A stretch of 52,855 nucleotides of DNA from Chara braunii (lineage: Eukaryota; Plantae; Charophyceae), in the NCBI GenBank assembly GCA_003427395.1, contig BFEA01000015.1, forward strand, positions 2,518,846-2,571,700, in the 5' to 3' direction. Positions within the stretch are counted from its first letter, which is position 1. Every line of letters begins with the position of its first letter. The notes beneath the pieces were generated by a model. The model was not told where the DNA came from and searched no databases. It saw nothing but the letters and a program-made list of their open reading frames with translations. Below are positions 3,234 to 52,855 of the stretch, in pieces. The position numbers and the translations under genes were made by a program.

Positions 3234-4153
3234 CATGCAACATGCAACATGTCAATGGCGGGAAGCACAAGGGCAAGTCATAACCTCGAAAAAAAAAAAA
3301 AGTAATGTCATATTCGAATAATGAGTTTTATCTTTTCGGAAGTCGAATATAAAAGGTATGTGTTGTTATCGAATATAACTCGTACGTGGTCTACTCAACA
3401 TCCCCTTCTGTTTTAGAACAGTTGGCCAACGTCATTTCAATTTCGAAATGTTCAACTCAAGGACCACGGCCTCATCGGCACCCTGCGGGCAGTTACCGCT
3501 CCTCTGCAAGCAGAACCGCCCGTTACCAATTAATTGACCTCCAAGCAAATTCACCACCCGTCCAACTACCCTTTGAACCTGAATGGATACCCCATACTAC
3601 CTAGAGCTAATCCAAAATCACTAACTCGATTCACGAGCATTGCTTTAATAACTGTTTTATTCGCTTGGAGTTGTGTAAATAAAAAATTAGTTAACAACTT
3701 TCATAACAATAATTGAATTGGAATTAATCGCTAGATAAATTATTCGCTGCAATCGTTTTGCGTGGGAGCCTCTAAAAAACATATAGGAGGTTAAGCATAA
3801 AAAAAATAATAATAATAAAACAATCCGTTTGTGAATCATAAAAGTGACACCAATCAACACAAGCTGGACACAAAGTGATATTGTTTGCTATTGATCTTAA
3901 TGGTTAATAGCTGAACGTTTTATAACATATTATTTGATATTTGGCGTGGTTTTGTTATACAATCCGCAAAATATCTATCAAATTACTTAATTCAATATTG
4001 ATATAAAATAATTAAGTACGTTTGACTTCATAATAAGTTTTTACCACGACGTTAACTTGACCTTGTATGAGTCAAATACAAATTTGATTTTTTTTTTTTA
4101 ATTAAAAAAAAACTCATTGCTTCGCACGTATTTTTTCCATCAATCAAATTCAA

Positions 4154-4224
4154 GGCTACGTAACATAAAGATAATGTATTGGACTGCAAATCCACGAATA
4201 ATGGTTCGAATCCATCCTTAGCCT
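4154..4224 (+). tRNA. trnC: Mitochondrial-type tRNA-Cys(GCA), probably a NUMT pseudogene
   Basis: GGCTACGTAACATAAAGATAATGTATTGGACTGCAAATCCACGAATAATGGTTCGAATCCATCCTTAGCCT forms a cloverleaf with GCA anticodon and resembles plant mitochondrial trnC. It has an acceptor-stem mismatch and has lost the D-loop GG. Confidence 0.8.
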
Positions 4225-4268
4225 ATTTACTCGGCAATTTAAGAAAGTTGAGTTTCTTTGATGCCGTC

Positions 4269-4765: not shown

Positions 4766-5152
4766 TAATGTAAAAAAAAAATGAATCTTACATGGGCAGG
4801 GAGAACGATGCATTATCAATTTGCACATCGAGGAGAGGGGGGAAGACAGAAAGAGAAAAAAAAAAAAACGGCATTTTTGTTGCGCAGTGGTACAATAAAC
4901 GCATCGTCGCCTCTCTCTCTCTGTTGATCTTCCGACACGTGTCTGTGAAAAATAAGAATGTTTTTGTGGAATATCTCCATACGATATCATAGATCATGAA
5001 AAAAATTGACAATAGTTTTCTTGTACAGGGTGGATTGCCAAAGTTTTTCCCACCAAATATAATTTAACTTTTCAAATTTGTAGTATTTTCTGATATGGGC
5101 AAGGAAATGAACCATTTTGCTTAGAAACAATATTAAAATTGTTTGTTTACTT

Positions 5153-5232
5153 CTAGGCTACGAGTCGGGCCGCCCAGGTCACCCTATTTTTTTGGGCGGC
5201 CCGGCCGTGCAAGGACCAACGAAGGTCCCAGC

Positions 5233-5269
<37 letters not shown>

Positions 5270-5437
5270 ATATCATGCAGAAAAATAAATTGAACAATGT
5301 TTGCCTCTGGATCACATCGAAATTCTTTACCAAATTAAAAATTAAATTTTAAATTAAAAAATAATTTTTTTTTTTTACTTTTATATTTTTTTTTTGCTCG
5401 ACCAGGCAAGTGGACTCGGGCCACTCTCGTAGCCGAG
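5153..5437. mobile_element. hAT-like MITE (285 bp)
   Basis: 12-bp TIR CTAGGCTACGAG / CTCGTAGCCGAG (1 mismatch) and 8-bp TSD GTTTACTT / GCTTACTT. GC-rich subterminal sequence in an AT-rich context. Confidence 0.75.
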
Positions 5438-5819
5438 GCTTACTTTTAATTATACTATTGACTTAATTTTTCTTCTTAGTGATATAAGTTAAAATTATTA
5501 TTCTTAAAAACAATGTTCAATTGCCTGTTCACATGCAAATATATGTATCAACCCTCTTATGTGGCCACATACATTTTGTATGTATAACGTACGGAAAACA
5601 AAAATCTAAAAAAAATGTGAAAAAAAAAAATACTACATAACATTGTCTGACAAGCAATGTTTGTCTTAAGCAACAAACCAAAATTCTTATAAAAATACGA
5701 AAAACAAAGTAAAAAAAATAAAATTGTAATTAATAAACACATAATCACTGCAACGAAAATATGTCTGTGTATTCACATGTGTGTATGTGTGATCAGAAAG
5801 AACACATTTACACTATCAA

Positions 5820-12924: not shown

Positions 12925-14802
<1,878 letters not shown>

Positions 14803-16412: not shown

Positions 16413-19400
16413 ATGGGAGACACGACTGGAAGGGAGAAGAAGAAGAGGATTAAATCCTGGCCACACGAGGAAGAGGTTGACTCCCTTGGCATCCAGGAAA
16501 GCAAATCAAATGAAGCCAAGATGGCGGAGGGGAATACGTTGTGGTGGGACGGACCACATGTGTGGTCTCCAGCCCAGGACACTCGTGGAGGGGGGGGGGG
16601 AGTCGCAATCTTGCTAAACAAGAAGCGGCAATCTCACCTCGTGTACTCCGAGGTAGATCTGTGTGGACGGTGGGCGTGGATCCAATTAATGTGGAATCGG
16701 GAAGAGCTAGTGGTCGTGGGCATTTATGCCCCATCGGAGCCAACGGCTCGAGCGACTTTCTTCAAGATGTCGGTAACAGCCTTCCCACCCACAGACCACG
16801 TGTTGATCACGGGAGACTCGAACCGTCTCGCTAGACGAAGCTATACTGGAAGGTTCACGCTCTGCAAGAAAATCGGACTCAGTTGCACTCTTGGAACTGA
16901 TGAGAGAACAGGTCCTTGCGGACACTTTTCGAATTCTGAACCAGCTGGATCCAGGACACACCTGGTTCTCCCACGTCCGCAAGGATAGTGGTGCTGTCAC
17001 GAGAAGAGGCATCTGGAATACTTCCTCTCTAGTGCCTCGCTCACTCAGAAAGTAACCGCAGTCGACATCGGACGAACCTGCTCTCTGATCACAAGCTGGT
17101 GATGCTCCAAGTCCTGCTGGGCTCAGCATCAGAGAGCGGCAGAGGATATTTCAAGCTCAATAACCAGAACCTGGAAGACCAGGGCTTGAAGGACCGGGTG
17201 GCAGATCACATGAGAGAGATTGGGAATCAGCTACAGCGTTCTTCCCCTCAGCTGCAGATTGGCTGGACGGAGGAGGTACGGCCCATTATCTCGGGCATGT
17301 TAAATCTCTGTTCCCGTATCCTGACCAAAGGTAGGAACAGAGAAGAGGAACAATGTAAAAGGGCAGTGGAAGAGGCGGAAAGAAGAATGGAACAACATCC
17401 AATCTCTGAGATGGTTAAGACAGCAGAACGGGAGCGAAGATTAGCCAAGCGGGAGAAGGAAAATTCAAATAGACAAGCACCAGCCGTGAGAGGAAGCTCT
17501 CAGGGTGAAGGGCATCCAGGTTGAAGACAGACTCACCGGAGACATTCCAGAGGCTCCTCCCCAGCAGGACATTCCAGCAAGTGGTACACCTTGACCACCC
17601 ATTCGACTGCGATGCCACCCCTGCTTCCACTCCTGAGGACATCCTCGAGTACGCTCGCTGCTACTACGCAGATATCCTAACCGCTGGGCGAGAACAGGAC
17701 TCTGTCCACTGGGCGAGAACGGGACTCTGCCCACTGGGTGAGAACAGGACTCAGTTCACTCTGACCTTTCTCAAGAAATGGACATGTGGGCACACACACA
17801 CGTCAAACTCACCACGGTCGGTGGAACGGCTGTCGTTGGACAGACCGATTACAACGGGGAAATGGGATCGGGGAAATGCCCGGGGAAATGGCATTGGGAA
17901 AATGCCCGGAGAAGCTCGGCAGACTCTGAAGGCCATGGCATCGGGGAAATGCCCGGGGGTGGACGGATTAACCGCTGAATTTTATCGAGAATGCTGGGAG
18001 GCAGTAGGCCCTCCACTAGTAGAAGTTTACAATGATCTATTGAGTGGGGGGTCAGTTAGGCAAGGGGGGATGACGCATGGGGTGATGATCTCCCTGATGT
18101 TCAAGAAGGGGGATAAAGCCGACGTCAGGAACAATCGCCCCATCTCAGTGCTCAACGTGGATGATAAAATCCTGGCAAAAACATTGGCGCTGAGACTGGG
18201 GGTGGGGGGAGCATCCTACCTCGATTAGTTGAGAGGGACCAGGGGGCCTTCATGCATACAGGACAGATCCATCTTCATTAACATCCTCACTGCGATCTAA
18301 GCCCGCCAAAGACGTCATTCAAGCGGAGAGCAGAGACACGGCAGTCCTCCTGCTGGATTTCGAGAAGGCAGACAACCGCATCGGGTGGGCTTTCGTACTT
18401 CTTAACACGTTGAGGAAGATGGGTTTTGCCGCTGGGTAATTTGCAATGTATTGTGCCTCGACCTCCACAGTCCTGGTCAATGGCCATCTTTCGCAGCCCT
18501 TTCAAATGTCCAGAGCTCTTCGTCAGGGCTGTCCGCTAGCCCCTCTCCTCTTCGTTCTTCAGCTGAAGATCCCCCTGAACTGCATGAGAAAGCATCCATC
18601 CATCCCCGAAACTCAAGTAACAGACAGCAAGGAGTGCAGGGTGAAGGCCTTCCCTGACGACCTCTTCGTTGTGTCTGAAAACTCACCTGAGTCTCTCGAT
18701 GCAGTGAAAGCGGTACTCATGGATTACTCACAGCTGTCTGAAGCACTGGTCAAATGGAACAAATCCTACTACCTTCTTCCCGGGGCAAGGTCCCACCTGC
18801 GCAAATTAGGAGATTTCGGCGGTTGATCTTTGCGATCTATGGTCAGTATCTCTTAATTCGTGCAAGTGGGACCTAGCCCCCGAACAGTTCGCCCTGTGCA
18901 TAGAATGGGGCATGCAGCGGGTAGAGACTCGAGAGCTGGAGAACATTTTCTGGGAGTTCTTGTTAGCCTGCAGGTCATGAGCGCTTCTCGGGGGGTTATC
19001 ATTCAACAAAGAATCTCAGCCCAGTTAAGGAGGCCATCTCTAGATGGAGTACCGGCAGTGTATTTCAGGAAACTGTGGGGGATCCTGCAGATACTCCCCA
19101 AACTTAAACCACACAAGTACAAAGCCACAGCCTTGCAGTCTCAGGGGGTTATCATTCTCGTTAGCCTGCAGGTCATGAGTGCTTCTCAGGGGGTTATCAT
19201 TCAACAAAGAATCTCAGCCAAGTTATTAAGGAGGCCATCTCTAGATGGAGTAGTGTCCTCCTAGAAGACTTGCAGCAGCCGGCAGTGGATTTCAGGAAAC
19301 TGTGGGGGATCCTGCAGATACTCCCGAAAACTTTAAACCACACAAGTACACGGCCCCACCCTTGCAGTCCAAAACTTGCCGCCACTAGAAAGCGAGCGAG

Positions 19401-20230
19401 GGCGAAACGTCAAACGCTGGGCCCACCGTCGATAAATTCGATCGGCGGCCACATTTTCGTTTCGCGACTCCAGAAGAATTTGAGGGCCATTGATAAATTC
19501 ACACAGCGGCCGCATTCTTTTTTCTTTTTTTTTTTAATTTGGACCATTTCTCAATTTATGCGTGTCATCCTTGAAAGCGCAGGGGCCATGCTAATCTTCA
19601 TTCTCTGTATCGTTCCAATTTTAACGGATGTCCCGAAGGACAGCGGCGTCGGATTTTCGTTTCGCGCCTCCAGAAGAAGGAATTTGAGGTGTCAGACCGG
19701 CGGCCCAGCTGCCCATGTACTGGTGGTTTAAGCATTCCTCCCTTACTCCCTTATTCTGTGGATGCTGTCGCTGTACCTGGTCAATTTGGTACAACCCCAT
19801 TGGCAGTGTGGTTGCTGGGCAGGGGTGTGGAGGATGCACATGCTGTACCTGGTCATTCGAGTCCACCAGACATCTGTGGTGGGACTGCCCAGCCTCCAAA
19901 AGAATCCGAACGTCGTGGGGGTACCATTGGCAAAGGATGGAGGGAAATGTGGTTTTGTGGGGTGAAAAGTGGGTTCTCTTGGGTTTCACCACGGATGGAT
20001 GGACATTTCGGGTAGGAGAGGCTCGGCATTTGTAGCCCATGTGGTTAGCGCGGTCATTGGCAGATAGAAACCGCGGTCTAGATTCGACGACGCCACATTC
20101 TCAGATATTGAGATGAAAGCAGCCATCAAAAGGGCCATCAGACAGGCCATTTTTATTGTCGTGGACTGGAGGAAAAGGGTCAAGAAAGGTAAAGGCCCTA
20201 GAAGAGAGATCTGGTGGTTTCTCAAAACTT
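16413..20230 (+). pseudogene. LINE ORF2 (endonuclease, RT, zf-RVT) remnant, frameshifted
   Basis: ORF fragments 16413-16988, 17099-17524, 17521-18228, 18446-18826 and 19715-20035 carry the successive ORF2 domains in the correct order. Confidence 0.9.
19536..19641 (-). pseudogene. U6: Full-length U6 snRNA retropseudogene with poly(A) tail (T-run 19515-19535 on +), inserted antisense in the LINE
   Basis: Reverse complement reads GTCCTTCGGGACATCCGTTAAAATTGGAACGATACAGAGAA[TGAA]GATTAGCATGGCCCCTGCGC[TTTC]AAGGATGACACGCATAAATTGAGAAATGGTCCAAATT plus an A-tail. This is plant-type U6 with two 4-nt insertions. Confidence 0.93.
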
Positions 20231-45037: not shown

Positions 45038-45110
45038 TAGGAGCTAGCCCAGTAGGTTACAGCAGTCGAATCTCACCTGACAGATACCAGGATCGAAACG
45101 CACGCGCCCC
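45038..45110 (+). promoter_or_regulatory. tRNA-derived head with Pol III A and B boxes
   Basis: A-box TAGCCCAGTAGG at 45045-45056 and B-box GGATCGAAAC at 45090-45099 (initiator-tRNA-like T loop), at tRNA spacing. A partial anticodon stem (GTC..GAC) lies between them. Confidence 0.6.
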
Positions 45111-45219
45111 ATTAGGCTAGCTCCTTTTGGAGTGGTCATGGGAGAAAGCCGCTCGACGCGGCCGTTTTCAGCCGTGCGATCTGTGAAATCGCACGGTTGA
45201 AAACAGTCGCGAGCATCAG

Positions 45220-45267
45220 GATTAGCATGACCCCTGCGCAAGGATGACACGCATAAATCGAGAAATG
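45220..45267 (+). pseudogene. U6: 3' half of U6 snRNA (AGC triad, internal stem-loop, 3' region) followed by a T-run; lacks the 5' hairpin and ACAGAGA box
   Basis: GATTAGCATGACCCCTGCGCAAGGATGACACGCATAAATCGAGAAATG is nearly identical to plant U6 and to the copy at 19536-19641. Confidence 0.9.
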
Positions 45268-48200
45268 ACTGACAATTTTTTTCTTTTGTTTAGGAAAAAA
45301 AAAAAGTCCATGAGGACTTGAACTCGGGTCTGTATTTCAACAAGTCGTGTGTAGGCCACGACAGGAAGGGACTGTTGGCTTTGCAAACGGACAAATAAAA
45401 AAAAGAAAAAAACTAAAAACTCAAACTGATGCGAAAGGAAAGCGCTACCCGGCGCCGTTGGAAGTGCATGGTGCACTTCAAGATCAGAGGACGTGACAGT
45501 GCCCGTGAAAACGGGCGACTGTTTTGATCACCAGGAAAGTTTTTAAGTATTCTGTTTTTTTAATTTCTTCGTTAAGCTCTATTTTATATTTCCTTAGTTT
45601 TATTTCTTCTTTTTAAATTTGTTAGATTTAGTTAGTACTATCACAATAGCGCCCGTTCGTTTTGATGAACGGGCTGCTATTGTCAGCTGATGAGTAAATG
45701 AAAATGGGCTCCGACGAATGAATCTACCGCGTGTATGCGGTTTTGTTCGGTTGCTGGTTTTGGGACCATGTGCTTGAGTTACGAGGGACTCTCTGCACGG
45801 TCGCGACCGTCGGTTGAGAGAGAGAGAGAGAGAGAGAAGAAAAGATTATCAACAGTCGCGCGCCTGTATCAGGCGCCTATGCAGCCCAGATACAGACGCA
45901 GGCAGGGGGAGGCAAAGACCCTGTGGGCTAGAATCTAGTTCGACTCTGTGAAATGACTTTGGGGGGGGGAGGAGAGGCTGCTCGTTTCGAAAAAACGAGT
46001 TGCCCCTCCCATAGGAAAACGAAAAGGTAGTAAGTGAAAGTAAAGGGAAAAAAAAAGAGGAAAAAAAAAAAAAGGTAACGGCCGCGTATATGGCCGCGGT
46101 CGTGGAACAGGTGCAACCCCTAGAAGGTTCTAGGGGCTGATGGGACTGCATCTGTTCAGTTGAACAGGCTGCAGGGAATGGCTGTACCTATGAGCACCTT
46201 GCCTGAAAAAATGGCCAGGTGAACTGGTGGAGGTGCTGGAGTGGAGAGTGGGGATCTGCAGTCGGCGCGGAAGTGGAGGCAGCCATAACCACCACTTCAC
46301 TTTGTGAAGTGTTGGGGAGGTGTTGCGCGACCATTATAGCGTTGGTAGCAGTTATTGGAGAGGTGGTGGGAAGGTGTTGTTCGTTGAACGCGGCGTCAGC
46401 GGCCGTTTTCTATAAGGTGTAGCGGTTACGTTGCACGCAACAACTATAATTGGAGAAGTGTTGGGGAGATGCTGCGTGGCTTTTGCGGTGATGACAGTTT
46501 TTTGCTAATGTACTGCGGGAACGCAGCCAAATGTTTTCGGCGGCGGCTATGAATTTTTTTTGGGAGTGACACGTGAGCGCTCCCGAATTTTTTCGGCGGC
46601 AAATGTGAATTTTTTTGGCAGTGTCGAGGAAGCGCTGCCGGATTTTTGCGGCAGCGGCACTGGTTTTGACGACAGTGGTGCGGAGGTGCTGCCGAACTGA
46701 CGGCATGGCGGCATCAAGGTCTCCCTGAAGGGAGGGGCTGACCATTTGGCGGCACGACAATGGCAATTTTTTTTGTAAGGTTACGCTACCAAAATTTTGG
46801 CACAACAGCGACAGTTCCGTTTTTTGTGGTACACGACAGTTATGATGGATCCCAGAGCGGCCTAGAGGTTTAACTTGTGCTGGTGCACGTTTGGGATTGT
46901 GCAGTAGCGGTGCGTGGACCGGTGGCGTGAAGATGGAACGGAATGAGTGCACGTGGCACTGGCTATTCGAGTTGCAGTGCTTGCGGTTTTTGCCAGAAGG
47001 ATATCTTTATTTTTTTTGGGGCTCGCGGCACAAGCGGTTTTCAGCTTGAATGACCTTTTTTTTTTTTGCGGCGCGCGGAGCAAGCGGTTTTGAGTTCAAA
47101 ACTACACAGTATTGCAGCAGTGGTGTGGGACTGCATTGGGACCACTCAGGACCATTTTGGGACTAGGTGGGACTGACTGTTGTGATCGGGACCGGCATGT
47201 TGGTGGGGGTATTGTGAGCGGACATGGTGATAGGAGGCGGTGTGAACTTGCGGTTGGTTAGGAGGTATCCTTGGTAGTGAAGGTGCAGTGAGGACTGCGT
47301 TGGGACTGTCCGGGATGTTGGGACGACGTGGGTTTGGATCATGGGAGCACCCTCTTTGAGGGTTATCTCATTCAGATGTCCTAGTGGACCCAATCTTGGT
47401 GTGATCAGACACTTGGAGAAAGACGCGGACGGTCATGTAGGAGAAAGGCCACAACTTACGAGTTGTGTGCTGCATATTTTTCTATGGCGGTCATTTTCTT
47501 ATGATTGGAATATTACCCGACTTTCTTGAGTGGGTCGGACTAAGCTTCACTCAAGGTCGGTTGAATGACTCAGGCTTTCCTTCACAACTGTGTGAACCCA
47601 CACTTTGCTTGACTCTGTTGTTTTGAACGTTCGAAAGAAAAGGTAGAGAAAGTTGTGCGAGTCATGCATCTGAATGGGAAGGTCTGACGTGATTCTGGGA
47701 TTGTACTGTTTTCTTTTGAACTTGTTTTCTATGCATGTTGTGCAGATAGGTAGAAGGATGCGTGCAAAGGAAATTGATTATGCCTATTTGAGATTAAAAA
47801 AAAGGATTATTCTCTTTCTACCTTCCACCTGCCTGCTTATGAAAGTGAAAATTGTTGTTTTGAAAAAGATAAGTTCAGTGATGGAAGTTTGGTAGGGTGA
47901 CTGATTCCTTTGAAGGAGGGTTGTTGCTGCGGGTTAGGAGGTCGTCAGAGGGTTGAACTTGACAATTTATCTTCAAAGTTGATCGAGCTGTTGCTGCTTG
48001 GCTACCATTGCGGGACCCTCAGACGATCAGAGATTTCGAGGCCCTCTCCTGAGAGTTGAGTCTGTCCCTCTCTTGTATCTCGCGCGTCTGAAACCCCTCC
48101 TTTTATCCTTCTTACTCTAAGTCTAGTCTGGTTCTGAGAGGAAGGCGACAAGCGGGATTGCAACCCGTAAGACCGCATCAAGACTCTGTGGGGAGTCTGC

Positions 48201-48509
48201 CCACCGATTGCGGGAGCTTTGTCGGAACTTAGGAGGAGTTCTGGAGGCAGGGAACCATCAGGTATATTTTTTTCTACGTGTATGAACCACTGTACCCCTG
48301 TTTGACTATCTCCCTTCAGTTTGATTGATTGTATGCATGCGTGTCCCCTATGATTTTGCTTTCTTTCAGGATTAATCAGACCGAATGGAAAAAACATGCG
48401 TGTAAAGTCTAAGTTTCTTCTTTATTTTAACAGAAAGCAGATTAAAGGATGAACTGGGGGAAGGTGAGAGGAAGGCAGTTTGCATGCGATTGACTGGGTC
48501 ATCCAAGGA

Positions 48510-49134
48510 CTGGGCATAGTTTTTAAGTTGAATAACCCAGCGCTATGTTTATTTGACTGTTTTTTTAAGGATCAGACATTGTTTCTAAGCTGAATGGTCT
48601 GGTTGCTATGTTTATTTCTGAGGATTTATCTGATTGAAGGGTTGAATTTTTGTTTTAGTATGAGGGAGGATTTATGGTCTAAGGCTAAGCATCGTTTCTA
48701 AGCTGAATGGTTTCGCCTGAAAACCACGCATTGAAGTTAAACTGAGTATAATAGAAAGTACTTTGCCTATATTTGCATGTGAACTGACAGTTGGACATTG
48801 TTTCTAAGCTAAATGGTCCAACACTAAGCCATATCATTAAGAAGAGAAGAGAAAGTACTGAGTATAATTGGAAGTACTCTGGGCAAGCTGAGCATTGTTT
48901 CTAAGTTGAATAGCTCAGTCCCCTACCCATATTTTTATTTCTTTGTGTGAGAACGAAGTCAGGGAACTATTAAATTTTGGATATTAAACAGTTCAGGGCG
49001 ACTAGGCATTGTTTCTAAGCTGAATGGTCTAGTCATACGCCCAAAGAAGAGAAAAGTAGTTGTGCAAACTGTTCGTGTATATCCTAAAGGCATGCTAGAC
49101 ATTGTTTCTAAGCTCAATGGTCTAGCACCTTGCC
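48510..49134. repeat. Array of seven stem-loops with a conserved 19-nt core ATTGTTTCTAAGCTGAATG and covarying closing stems
   Basis: Cores start at 48516, 48578, 48691, 48797, 48894, 49008 and 49101. Each is flanked by a different pair of complementary arms. Confidence 0.92.
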
Positions 49135-49172
49135 ATATGTAAGTTGGGTATAAGGAACAAATTATCTGAGGG

Positions 49173-49276
49173 TTTCACGAACTATCTTATGAGGATTTTG
49201 ACTTGGGAACTGGTGAGAGTACTTTTTCACGAACTATCTTATGAGGATTTTGACTTGGGAACTGGTGAGAGTACTT
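49173..49276. repeat. Perfect 52-bp tandem duplication
   Basis: TTTCACGAACTATCTTATGAGGATTTTGACTTGGGAACTGGTGAGAGTACTT x2. Confidence 0.95.
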
Positions 49277-49487
49277 ACCTTTGTGGTTTGACGTGCATGT
49301 GGCTGAGTAAGATCACTACTTAGTCTGAGTTTCAGTTTGACAGGTAGTTGCTTTAGTTGCTCGCCACGTGCTAGAGCGATAAGAGTTAGTTTTGAGCTAA
49401 CTTTGTTTTACTTACGTCAATTTTTGCATTTTTTTGGTTCATTCGTTATACTTGGTTTTGTATAAATTTTGGTAAGCTACTTTCTTT

Positions 49488-49790
49488 GCGGGAAGAGTTG
49501 CCGAAATTTCTGCAAATCAAAGGAGTTAGACAAATTTTGACTTTTCAAAGTTCGACTTGTTTAAATTTTATATATGGCTTAGTAGAAATTTGAGAAGTCT
49601 CATTTTCTAAAGGGAGTGCTGCCCAAAATTTAGCTAATTCAGGGAGTGAGACAAAATTTGACTTTGAAAAGTTGAAGACTATTTTTTGTTTTCATATTTA
49701 GGATGATATAAATTTCAAAAAAACACATTTTCTACGGGAAGAGCTGCCGAAATTTTCTTAATTAAAGGAGTTATAATATATTTTGACAGG
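49488..49790. repeat. Three diverged repeats at ~123-bp period
   Basis: GGGA(A)GWGYTGCCSAAAWTT...AGGAGT..GACAAA.TTTGAC at ~49489, 49612 and 49736. Confidence 0.7.
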
Positions 49791-50609
49791 TGACGATTTT
49801 GGAAATCCACCCTGAAAAGGGGAAATTCTGTCATTAGTCTACCTTTCTTTGGGCACTGACTTAGAGGTAGGCTTAGACTTAGTTTGCAGGAGAATTTTTG
49901 GTGAGATCGTGTTATGGAGATTATTCTCCATAGACTTATAGATCTAGTTTGGGGATTGGTTTGTCTTGTGTTACATGTCCTCTTGATCGTTTGATTCAAG
50001 GTCAGGACTAGATTCAGCTTGATCCTACGAGGATCATCTTCTGTTATCACTGATAACAGGTTGGTTGCCGATTCGTCGGTTTACGATTCAACTTCAATCC
50101 ATTCTTGTCACTCAACCTAAGGACTTTAGCCCTGTGGTTTGAATTGTTTTGTTGTGTTTTCGCCCGGACTTTATTTGAATGACCATTTAAAGAAAAGTAC
50201 TGAGTATTTTATTTTGATGAGTTGCACAAGAGTGAGGCTTGCATGGCTAAAGCGAGGGGTGTGAGTGCATAGAATGGTTGAAGTTGACCCCGTGTAGTGC
50301 ATGGACTTCTGGTTGAATCTTTGATGTGATTGCAGGTATGTTTGGTGGTTTGGACTTTGGATTGACCGTCTGCGATTATATATATGGATGAGAGAAATCC
50401 CACTGTGATTGTGAGAAGTGATCATCACATATTTATAACCCTCTATATATGTGATGGACCCGCCGGGATGGCGGTCCGTCAGGATCAAGACGAAGGGATG
50501 AGGATGAGGGAGATGGAGTTGGAGCTGGAAGGGACAGCGCAACTCCAAAGCAGACTCAACACGCACGTACTCCAATCTGTGCAAATGAAGAATGCCACAA
50601 AATAGACTG

Positions 50610-50800
50610 CAGCTGGGGTATACCCCCAGCGGACTGACTGGACTGGACTGGACTGGCCTGGTACCGATAGTGGTACCAGGCAGGACTGGACTGGACTGAA
50701 TAACCGCACGGCCTGTGGGGTCAGGCCATGGCCTNNTCCCACAGGCCGGACTGGCAAATAGCCAAATAGGCCCTGACTGTGGGCCGGGGCAGATGAAGGC
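50610..50800. repeat. GGACT pentamer cluster, probably a DNA-transposon subterminal region
   Basis: GGACTGACTGGACTGGACTGGACTGG (50630-50656) and GGACTGGACTGGACTG (50683-50698). Confidence 0.5.
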
Positions 50801-51001
50801 CCGCTGCACGATCTTCAGACCTAGGATGCGGAGCAAGCTCCATGCAGAGTCCATGCGATGCATCCTAGACTATATAATGTCAAAAGAAAAGCAAATGTCT
50901 GGTATACATATCCTAGCTAACAGCAGAAAATGAAATGTAGTATGATACACTCCTAAAGTCCTGGAGGTAGTGGCCTCAGTGCTGAAAGGAGAAGAGCAAT
51001 A

Positions 51002-51626
51002 TGTCACAAGATAATGTCATGTCGCTAAACCACTAAAAGTGGGATGGTATCAGAGGGGGTGAATGCAGCCTAAGAATCGAAACTCCTNAGGGCAGTCACA
51101 CATGAAGGTGGGATATGTCATCAGGCTCAAGGTGGGAGAGTGGTAGCGAAACAAAACCAATGACCCTAACAGATAGACCATCAAGGCGGGTAATGCTCGA
51201 CAAAAGGGGGACACCATGCAGGGTCGACCATGAAAAGGGGGAGCCTGGAATAGGGTGGAGATATGCCTAACTGAAGGCATGCAAGGGCCGACACTAGGGT
51301 GATGAGGGCAGTGGGTGAGGGAAACATGCACACAACTCACCGACTGGGGGAGGAAGGATCTAGATCTGGGAGCAGGGAAGCCAAGATAACGCTACGGTCC
51401 CAATGCCTGTGCGATACCAAGGGAGAGCCCAACTCAAAGAGACCCAGCTAAGTGAGAACCATCATGCGACAGATGCAAGGGAATGTACAGGGTAGGGTGG
51501 TGGTGTGAAGTAGTCACGTCCAAAGTAGCTGAAGCCGATAAGGTAGCTGAAGTCGTCGAATTGGTCGATGACGTCGATGAAGTAGCAGTCGAGTCGATGT
51601 CGAAGCAGAGCCGCAAAACGCTGACA
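51002..51626 (-). mobile_element. Candidate 3' LTR of the chromovirus
   Basis: Bounded by TGTCA...TGACA inverted ends and begins ~70 nt after the pol stop codon. The partner LTR is not in the window. Confidence 0.5.
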
Positions 51627-51696
51627 TCCTGAAGAAGAGCTGATGATGGAGTACCTGATGGTGTGAGTCAGTGGGGAAAGATGGAGGATAAGAGTG

Positions 51697-52855
51697 TCAG
51701 TCATCGTACCGTGAAGGGCGACGATGAGTGCGCTGTGGACGCTCGGAGGCGACCATCTGCGGCTGAGGAACGGCCTCAAAGGGAGCGGGCTCATCCTCAG
51801 CGATCTCCTCAGCCGGAGGAGGAGGAAGAGGGTAAGTCGGCTGAGTAGAAGCAGATGTCCCAGCACGACGAGCACGATCATATGCACGCACCAACATCCT
51901 GGCGTGTTGCAAGTGCTCGAGGGGCTCCCAAGTAGCCTCCTCATCAGGGTAGCCCTTCCAACGTACAAGGTACTCGATGCGTGGAGGGGTATCGTCGGTA
52001 ACTCGGCGTGATACGATGTCGGAAACAACGAACTCCTCGTGACCGTCCACCATGATAGGTGGAGGGCGCTCATAAGGGCGTCCGGTGAAGCGCTCGGATG
52101 GTCTGCGATAAGGACGCAGCAAGGAGACGTGGTAAACATCGTGTACGCGAGCCTGTCGAAGGTAATCAGGTAGCTTCACACGGAAGCTGACCGGACTAGC
52201 GGCAGTATCAGAGCCGACGGCCTGAAGGATGCGGCATGGACCGAAGAAACTACGCCTGAACTTGCGAAGCATATCTGCTTCGAGCTGTAAGTGGAGTGCG
52301 TCGACGAGCACATCGTCACCGACTTTGAATGGATGATCCATTCGTGATCGGTTCGCTCGTGCGGCCATGCGAGTCTGGGAGTCGGCTAAACTCTCGTGTG
52401 CACGCTTCATAATCGCCGCCATGTGGGCGATCCTGTCGTCAAGCGCAGGGCAACGAGTGTCTAGGCGCAACCGCGATGGTCGTAGGAAATCCGCAGGTAC
52501 GCGAGGGTGGTGGCCGAGGTCGCAATAGAATGGCGACATCCCCGTGGCTGGCGAAACAGCGTGGTTGTACGCAATCTCCTCGTGGGCTAAGTGTAAGTCC
52601 CACTGCTGGTCATCCCTAACAAACTTTCGGAGGATATTACCGAGAGTTTTGTGGGTGACCTCAGTCTGACCATCCGTCTAAGGGTGGTAAGACGATGAGA
52701 TGCGGAGCTGGGATCCATACACCTCGTGTAGGCGTCGCCAGAATGTGCTGGTAAAGCGCGGGTCACGGTCGGAGATGATGCTCTGAGGTAAGCCGTGATC
52801 TCTCACGACTCGGTCGAAGACGATGTCGGCGACCTTACGAGCGCTAATGCGATAG
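51697..52855 (-). pseudogene. Ty3/gypsy chromovirus pol C-terminus (integrase core, GPY/F, chromodomain) with a premature stop; continues beyond the window
   Basis: HGLPQSIISDRDPRFTSTFW, SSYHP*TDGQTE (TAG at 52678-80 in place of the usual Q), AYN..TGMSPF, FFGPCRI, VHDVYHVSLLRPY, and chromodomain EFVVSDIV..YLVRWKGYPDEEATWEP. Confidence 0.93.

Follow-up and report, generated by a model that had tools for sequence, protein, structure and literature searches.

A tandem array of seven hairpins with a conserved 19-nt loop and covarying stems on a high-copy dispersed repeat of Chara braunii

Seven copies of a single hairpin module were found in tandem on a dispersed repeat of very high copy number in Chara braunii, within a 52,855-nt stretch of one contig that was analysed as a whole (hereafter the window). 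In the lineage that multiplied this repeat, the module appears to have been kept under selection as a folded single strand: its 19-nt loop is retained, and the stem of 6–9 bp that closes it changes only in matching pairs. The copy present in the window is a silent, mutating insertion. Since compensating changes keep the stems paired and conservation is far higher in the loop than in either stems or spacers, the pattern indicates that selection acted on a folded single strand in active ancestors of the window copy. The coordinates of the array, of its host repeat and of the other features discussed are collected in Table 1.

Table 1. Coordinates of the features identified in the window
Feature	Position	Strand	Remarks
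Whole array	48504–49131	+	Seven hairpins sharing a conserved 19-nt core; unit starts 62–114 nt apart
Unit 1	48510–48540	+	Core diverged by 5 mismatches; 5-pair stem with an additional C.A where the loop closes
Unit 2	48570–48604	+	Consensus core; 8-bp stem, two G.U among its pairs on the + strand
Unit 3	48682–48718	+	9-position stem; one T.C mismatch at 48714, a letter private to the window copy
Unit 4	48790–48822	+	7-bp stem, Watson-Crick throughout; preceded by a TATATTTGCATGTGAAC patch, also present in the old copy
Unit 5	48887–48919	+	7-bp stem; final core letter 48912 A private to the window copy (family majority G)
Unit 6	49000–49034	+	8-bp stem including one G.U; possible 4-bp lower stem GGGC/GCCC
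Unit 7	49093–49127	+	8-bp Watson-Crick stem; core letter 49115 C private to the window copy (family G); possible lower stem GGCA/TGCC
Extra segment of the array-bearing repeat	49140–49759	+	Missing from the old copy; perfect 52-bp tandem duplication 49173–49276; 121-bp repeat, 2.3 copies, 49489–49771
Tail common to the old copy	49760–49833	+	Polypurine run 49809–49822; homology stops at TGTCA (49833)
Older fragment of the array-bearing repeat	5007–5545	-	A+T-enriched, partly collinear; units 5483–5526 and 5101–5143
Chromovirus, 3' part	50450–52855	-	Integrase SH3 and chromodomain ORF 51697–52539; LTR outer edge 50450
tRNA-Cys(GCA) gene	4153–4225	+	
Adenylosuccinate synthetase ORF	12925–14766	-	Uninterrupted, full domain, E = 3e-177
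Endonuclease/exonuclease/phosphatase-domain ORF	16413–16988	+	Within a G+C-rich block, 16–25 kb
Full-length U6 snRNA gene	19533–19641	-	72.6 bits

Hairpin units, stems and loop conservation

The core ATTGTTTCTAAGCTGAATG occurs on the + strand at 48578, 48691, 48797, 48894, 49008 and 49101 with 0–2 mismatches each, the chance expectation for such matches in the window being 0.03. A seventh core, at 48516, is more diverged (five mismatches) and was recovered by a repeat search and by a covariance model of the unit, with which it scores 48 bits. All seven recurrences described in an initial annotation of this DNA were recovered in this way, together with their irregular core-to-core periods (62, 113, 106, 97, 114 and 93 nt), and the seven pairs of closing arms quoted there are all present in the sequence. 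When the covariance model was applied to the whole window with filters off, no units were found beyond these seven and two decayed ones. The spacers between units are 26–78 nt long and share patches common to several of them, hence they are related to each other rather than unique; one such patch, described at the outset as occurring twice, was located at two places.

The stems closing the cores extend over 6–9 positions, one internal mismatch being allowed, and comprise 46 Watson-Crick pairs, five G.U pairs, one C.A and one other mismatch. At least seven contiguous pairs run directly from the core in five of the seven units, an extent with a probability of 0.002 at random window positions. 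Covariation was counted on a gap-free alignment of the seven related units from this one locus, using a fixed frame of an 8-pair helix. In this alignment 89.3% of cells are paired and 12 cells are doubly changed, with changes on both sides at seven of the eight stem positions; none of 500 column shuffles matched the observed values, and sliding the 3' partner by 1–3 columns drops pairing to 16–39%. The same helix is found by RNAalifold. The proposal that a paired stem has been maintained by compensating changes is upheld by these counts. Moreover, six of the eight possible combinations of G-C and A-U are used at the three central stem positions across the seven units, and a single inherited double change therefore cannot account for the pattern. 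Stem differences between units are transitions without exception.

The loop behaves differently from its surroundings. Fifteen of the 19 core columns are invariant, the loop centre reading UAAGYU, and mean pairwise identity is 0.88 among cores (0.92 without unit 1), as compared with 0.50–0.55 among arms and approximately 0.54 among spacers after optimal gapped alignment; what the initial annotation had named as grounds against its reading, such as a loop no better conserved than the spacers, was thus not observed. Folded singly, the units adopt the predicted hairpin, and six of the seven hairpins persist in the minimum-energy fold of the 661-nt stretch. The folding energy of the array as a whole is no better than that of shuffled sequence (z = -0.06 on the + strand and -0.80 on the - strand).

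Two additions to the basic hairpin had also been suggested. The extension of several stems past a bulge stands as far as the pairings themselves are concerned, in that GGGC/GCCC, GGCA/TGCC and TGGT/ACCA all exist and lower stems of 3–4 bp were found in five to six of the seven units, but a 4-bp lower stem is encountered at 40% of random sites when these are given equal search freedom. An inner CATT/AATG helix within the core can form in four units, but three of its positions vary and none of these is compensated, so this element was abandoned.

The host repeat, its decay and its transcription

DNA contigs of one Chara braunii run were aligned to positions 46100–50620 at an identity of at least 90%. 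This yielded 28,205 contig pieces, mostly 90–95% alike, with summed depths of 8,000–64,000 in the bins of the array, against approximately 8–9 for the contigs of the locus itself, summed depth not being equivalent to copy number. The array-bearing repeat is clearly very abundant in Chara braunii, and it is dispersed. Copies with fewer units exist, as seen from the contig joints 48600>49131, 48476>48577 and 48911>49000.

Five sites of the array stretch (48714, 48912, 49115, 49038 and 49068) rank among the best-supported differences between the window copy and the family majority. With the majority letter at 48714 (C>A), unit 3 gains a T-A pair in place of its sole internal mismatch; those at 48912 (A>G) and 49115 (C>G) bring the cores of units 5 and 7 back to consensus, and the differences at 49038 and 49068 fall in a bulge and a spacer. 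Since it is the majority letters that pair or match the core consensus at the first three sites, the unit-specific stems are to be regarded as a trait of the family, and the defects of the window copy as later random decay.

A more advanced stage of decay is offered by the older fragment of the repeat on the opposite strand. It is collinear with 48768–48876 at 72% identity and also carries the tail 49760–49833, without the segment 49140–49759 that precedes it in the younger copy. Its two units score 22.7 and 18.3 bits with the covariance model and keep five and four of the eight stem pairs, respectively. Since stem pairing has been lost in this fragment, pairing is not kept automatically in resident DNA. 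Homology between the two copies stops at TGTCA (49833 and 5007), right behind the polypurine run, and the host repeat possibly ends on the right at this point (49833).

The initial annotation had placed the array in the leader of a decayed retroelement spanning 46.2–50.2 kb. This assignment gained no support: no coding remnant, PBS or second LTR was found in the window. None of the ORFs between 45.3 and 50.4 kb has a Pfam match or a homologue, and a minus-strand ORF at 49715–50050 likewise returned no homologues. An LTR pair test detected no second copy of the array region within the window, no PBS adjoins that region, and no gag or pol in the window is attributable to the array-bearing repeat. 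With respect to LTR boundaries, homology ends in TGTCA at 49833 after the polypurine run, and the right side is interrupted by a chromovirus insertion and then by the end of the window.

This chromovirus inserted about 600 bp past the apparent end of the array-bearing repeat. The 21 best database matches of its integrase-chromodomain ORF are all Chara braunii proteins, with up to 93% identity; an exact look-up of its protein gave no record. From 50450 rightwards, the window matches both LTRs of a 96.6%-identical chromovirus copy in another Chara locus (L036), the match beginning exactly at 50450, and in other chromovirus copies, seen in reads and contigs, the reverse complement of the PBS TGGTATCAGAGC, of tRNA-iMet type, stands immediately before 50450–50456. 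The chromovirus is an insertion separate from, and unrelated to, the array-bearing repeat. Neither the array nor its flanks were found in six further loci of assembly GCA_003427395.1, 129 kb in total, that surround genes of related chromoviruses, and a query with the putative chromovirus Gag gave one irrelevant match. A location of the array inside the neighbouring chromovirus LTR was considered and ruled out, the LTR edge being exactly at 50450.

Transcription was assessed in three oligo-dT paired RNA libraries (X6, X7 and X8), examined as raw reads. X6 and X8 are clearly stranded and give a depth of 0–0.4x over the array; their sole strong signal lies at 48128–48254, on another repeat piece of still greater abundance. 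In X7, coverage is low, falls on both strands and tracks the DNA depth profile, and 12 of 1,809 reads are at least 99% identical to the locus; first mates lie on the + strand at a ratio of approximately 2:1, but coverage follows DNA depth and the strandedness of this library is uncalibrated against a known gene. Over the stretch, the three libraries showed neither RNA joints nor favoured molecule ends, and none of 16 further Chara braunii runs, listed as RNA or of unspecified kind, contained words of the stretch. In poly(A) RNA the locus is effectively silent, and transcription of the array-bearing family is weak or unproven. Two candidate structures were rejected along the way: splicing around the array, from donor-like sites at 48262 and 48455, for which there are no RNA joints, and an identification of the loose-end consensus after 48254 with 50278–50302, where the resemblance is weak (score 14/30).

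The piece at 48128–48254 itself (approximately 130 bp, upstream of the array) is the most abundant one in the DNA contigs, with a bin depth of 127,010. In two RNA runs its signal is strand-specific, with the first mate on the - strand only, and reaches 46x, the reads deriving from paralogues of 90–95% identity that diverge on both sides. A 131-aa minus-strand ORF covering this piece (48005–48397) found no homologue among 1.84 billion representatives.

Candidate functions and alternatives

The reading we favour, to which we would assign nearly but not quite an even chance, is that the hairpin array would provide multivalent protein-docking sites on the RNA of the element. The hairpins would line up on the RNA of the repeat and offer a single loop-reading protein a series of equivalent places to dock. 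The likeliest partner would be the Gag/nucleocapsid of the element itself, serving selective packaging; alternatively, a host factor might export, stabilise or sort the RNA. Many weak, identical sites would confer high avidity, and stems of differing sequence would reduce recombination between units. The loop contains three UG steps, and retroviral nucleocapsid zinc knuckles prefer UG steps, which for the Chara loop is a lead only.

The initial annotation had recognised no known family, and the searches agree with it. In a scan of 42.0–50.5 kb nothing reached the Rfam 15 gathering score on the array, and at E ≤ 10 a lncRNA model was the only one to overlap it, by a chance match of 14.9 bits. 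The core pattern gave 35 single matches in metagenome and viral contig collections, none of them with pairing arms, as expected by chance, and literature searches turned up no account of arrays of this kind, whether for Chara or for LTR elements. The array also departs from a CRISPR-like organisation, as its stems differ (arm identity approximately 0.5), its spacers of 26–78 nt have common patches and the genome is eukaryotic.

Several stem-loops with a common loop motif are present in the array, as in sets of viral packaging signals, its nearest functional analogues. In single-stranded RNA viruses and hepatitis B virus (HBV), such signals are stem-loops with differing stems and one loop motif that act multivalently on the capsid protein; their contacts are individually weak, and they are scattered in coding genomes and share a degenerate motif of 3–5 nt (PMC6281560, PMC5699041). 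The Chara array resembles them in having many stem-loops, one loop motif and differing stem sequences, and differs from them in being a tight non-coding tandem row with a common loop of 19 nt, located on a nuclear mobile repeat. The Psi and dimerisation stem-loops of retroviruses and LTR retrotransposons are cis-acting non-coding hairpins as well, whose unpaired loop bases are read by the Gag nucleocapsid. These are, however, few and different hairpins occurring once each, whereas the Chara array repeats one loop, and a leader position for it is hypothetical. Also comparable are engineered MS2, PP7 and boxB arrays, in which tandem hairpins with one protein-binding loop and varied stems or linkers serve multivalent RNA tagging; these are synthetic and have a known partner, whereas the Chara array is natural and its partner putative. 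Finally, non-coding tandem repeats of variable copy number are familiar from plant LTR retrotransposons, as enhancer repeats in U3 or as 3' UTR repeats in Tat/Ogre elements. The Chara array likewise varies in unit number between copies; to our knowledge, an architecture of conserved loop and co-varying stem has not been reported for U3 or Tat/Ogre repeats.

A broader proposition, which we regard as doubtful although worth stating, is that each Chara retroelement family carries a tandem RNA 'address label', in which a family-specific loop would be read by the family's own protein, as a natural counterpart of MS2-type tags, and would direct packaging or export, also for a non-autonomous parasite. 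If the loops are docking sites, such arrays would represent a natural, evolved form of the hand-built multivalent hairpin tags, and would offer a clean system for telling retroelement RNA from cellular RNA and from that of rival families. A fixed loop on free but paired stems constitutes unusually direct evidence of covariation from one locus, and a family so numerous in Chara braunii would permit a strong statistical test as well as identification of the partner. The window itself, with one decayed and silent copy of the array, carries a more modest message.

Each of the rival explanations fails to account for either the conservation of the loop or the compensation of the stems. The array might be a neutral by-product without function, generated by tandem duplication of a short palindromic module whose pairing was repaired at the DNA level, through template switching at quasi-palindromes or mismatch correction in hairpin intermediates. 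Stem differences that are all transitions would be expected from deamination in methylated repeats, the variable unit number implies that replication slippage or unequal exchange is active, and the fold of the whole array is not unusually stable. We nonetheless consider this origin unlikely, as it leaves unexplained why the loop is conserved at 88–92% and arms and spacers at approximately 50%, and as resident DNA is evidently not self-correcting, given that the old copy lost its pairing and the private changes of the window copy break pairs. The hairpins might instead work as single-stranded DNA while the element is reverse transcribed or integrated, for instance in pausing or in guiding strand transfer; such a role draws on the scarcity of RNA evidence and on the strand symmetry of the stems. 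As already noted in the initial annotation, the functional strand cannot be fixed from the wobble pairs: 89.3% of cells pair on the + strand and 85.7% on the - strand, with five G.U against one A.C within the stems when read on +, and near-equal pairing is expected if either or both DNA strands matter. The five pairs in question would, however, be G.T in DNA and weak, conservation of the 19-nt loop is more suggestive of a sequence read by a protein than of a simple pause site, and we know of no retroelement step that employs a multi-copy hairpin row; this role is accordingly rated as quite unlikely. The same low rating applies to duplex-DNA enhancer or promoter repeats of an LTR, with the 19-nt core as a transcription-factor site repeated in U3. 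Tandem enhancer repeats are common in LTR U3 regions, and units 1 and 4 each have an octamer-like TTTGCATG patch upstream, which is retained in the old copy, but the spacing is irregular (62–114 nt) and a duplex-binding factor gives the arms no reason to co-vary complementarily. A 19-nt loop on a 6–9 bp stem is, besides, a poor cruciform in duplex DNA, and since a duplex-binding factor does not need complementary arms, we infer a single-stranded form.

Two further explanations concern RNA without a docking protein. Loop-loop kissing for RNA dimerisation, or a sponge for host small RNAs, would make use of the loop centre, which reads AGCU, or AGUU in two of the units, and is self-complementary when wobble is allowed. 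Such a 4-nt palindrome is, however, expected by chance in roughly four of ten 19-nt loops, by our estimate, and a complement to the loop longer than 9 nt is absent from the same strand in the window, so that RNA-RNA contacts appear very unlikely. It is highly improbable that the array is a precursor of processed small RNAs, whether as a repeat-spacer transcript cut at the hairpins, which the initial annotation had offered as an option, or as a miRNA- or snoRNA-like cluster. The repeat-spacer layout and a D-box-like CUGA in the core agree with such a precursor. Precursors of miRNAs and other hairpin RNAs have stems of about 20 bp or more, however, and the stems found here, of 6–9 bp with 19-nt loops, are too short for Dicer substrates; CUGA is the only box C/D feature of the core, with no C box (RUGAUGA) and no match to an Rfam snoRNA; the spacers are related to each other rather than unique; and dispersed copies of the units number in the hundreds or more. 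At this locus, which is essentially silent in poly(A) RNA, the reads show no starts, ends or joints indicative of processing, and the option of a processed transcript gains no support from them.

Minor observations in the window and in other Chara loci

Possible further relics of units were noted at 47512–47556, 47037–47058 and 50170–50207, one of them forming a hairpin with an 8-bp stem and CTAAGCT in the loop. TTGAATGAC occurs on the + strand at 47046, 47561 and 50175 within 46–50.4 kb, and six times in the whole window against an expectation of 0.68; the motif is enriched, but the contexts are not convincing, and these sites were rejected as unit relics. A spacer-like AAAGTACTGAGTAT is present at 50194. 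Within the expected minus-strand LTR of the chromovirus, the + strand displays a PBS-like TGGTATCAGAGG and two AAAAGGGGGA runs (51045–51056 and 51203–51241), and a related CCCTGAAAAGGGG motif lies at 49806.

Among the genes and gene-like features in the remainder of the window, the adenylosuccinate synthetase ORF looks like an intron-less host gene, and the endonuclease/exonuclease/phosphatase-domain ORF is probably a LINE remnant. Two U6 matches and the tRNA gene mark the window as eukaryotic DNA. In another Chara locus (L037, 18000–20300), a tandem repeat of approximately 750–835 bp is present in three copies, with extended (TA)n tracts and clustered palindromes of the CCGAACGTTCGGGG type; it adjoins a chromovirus and is unrelated to the hairpin array. 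A further U6 match on the + strand of the window (45176–45279, with 45038–45125) scores 50.2 bits, just above the gathering score. Its likeness to the full-length U6 gene is confined to the 3' half. An 18-nt inverted repeat stands in front of this match, and a different Chara locus (L040, 5121–5168) contains a U6 3' half of similar kind.
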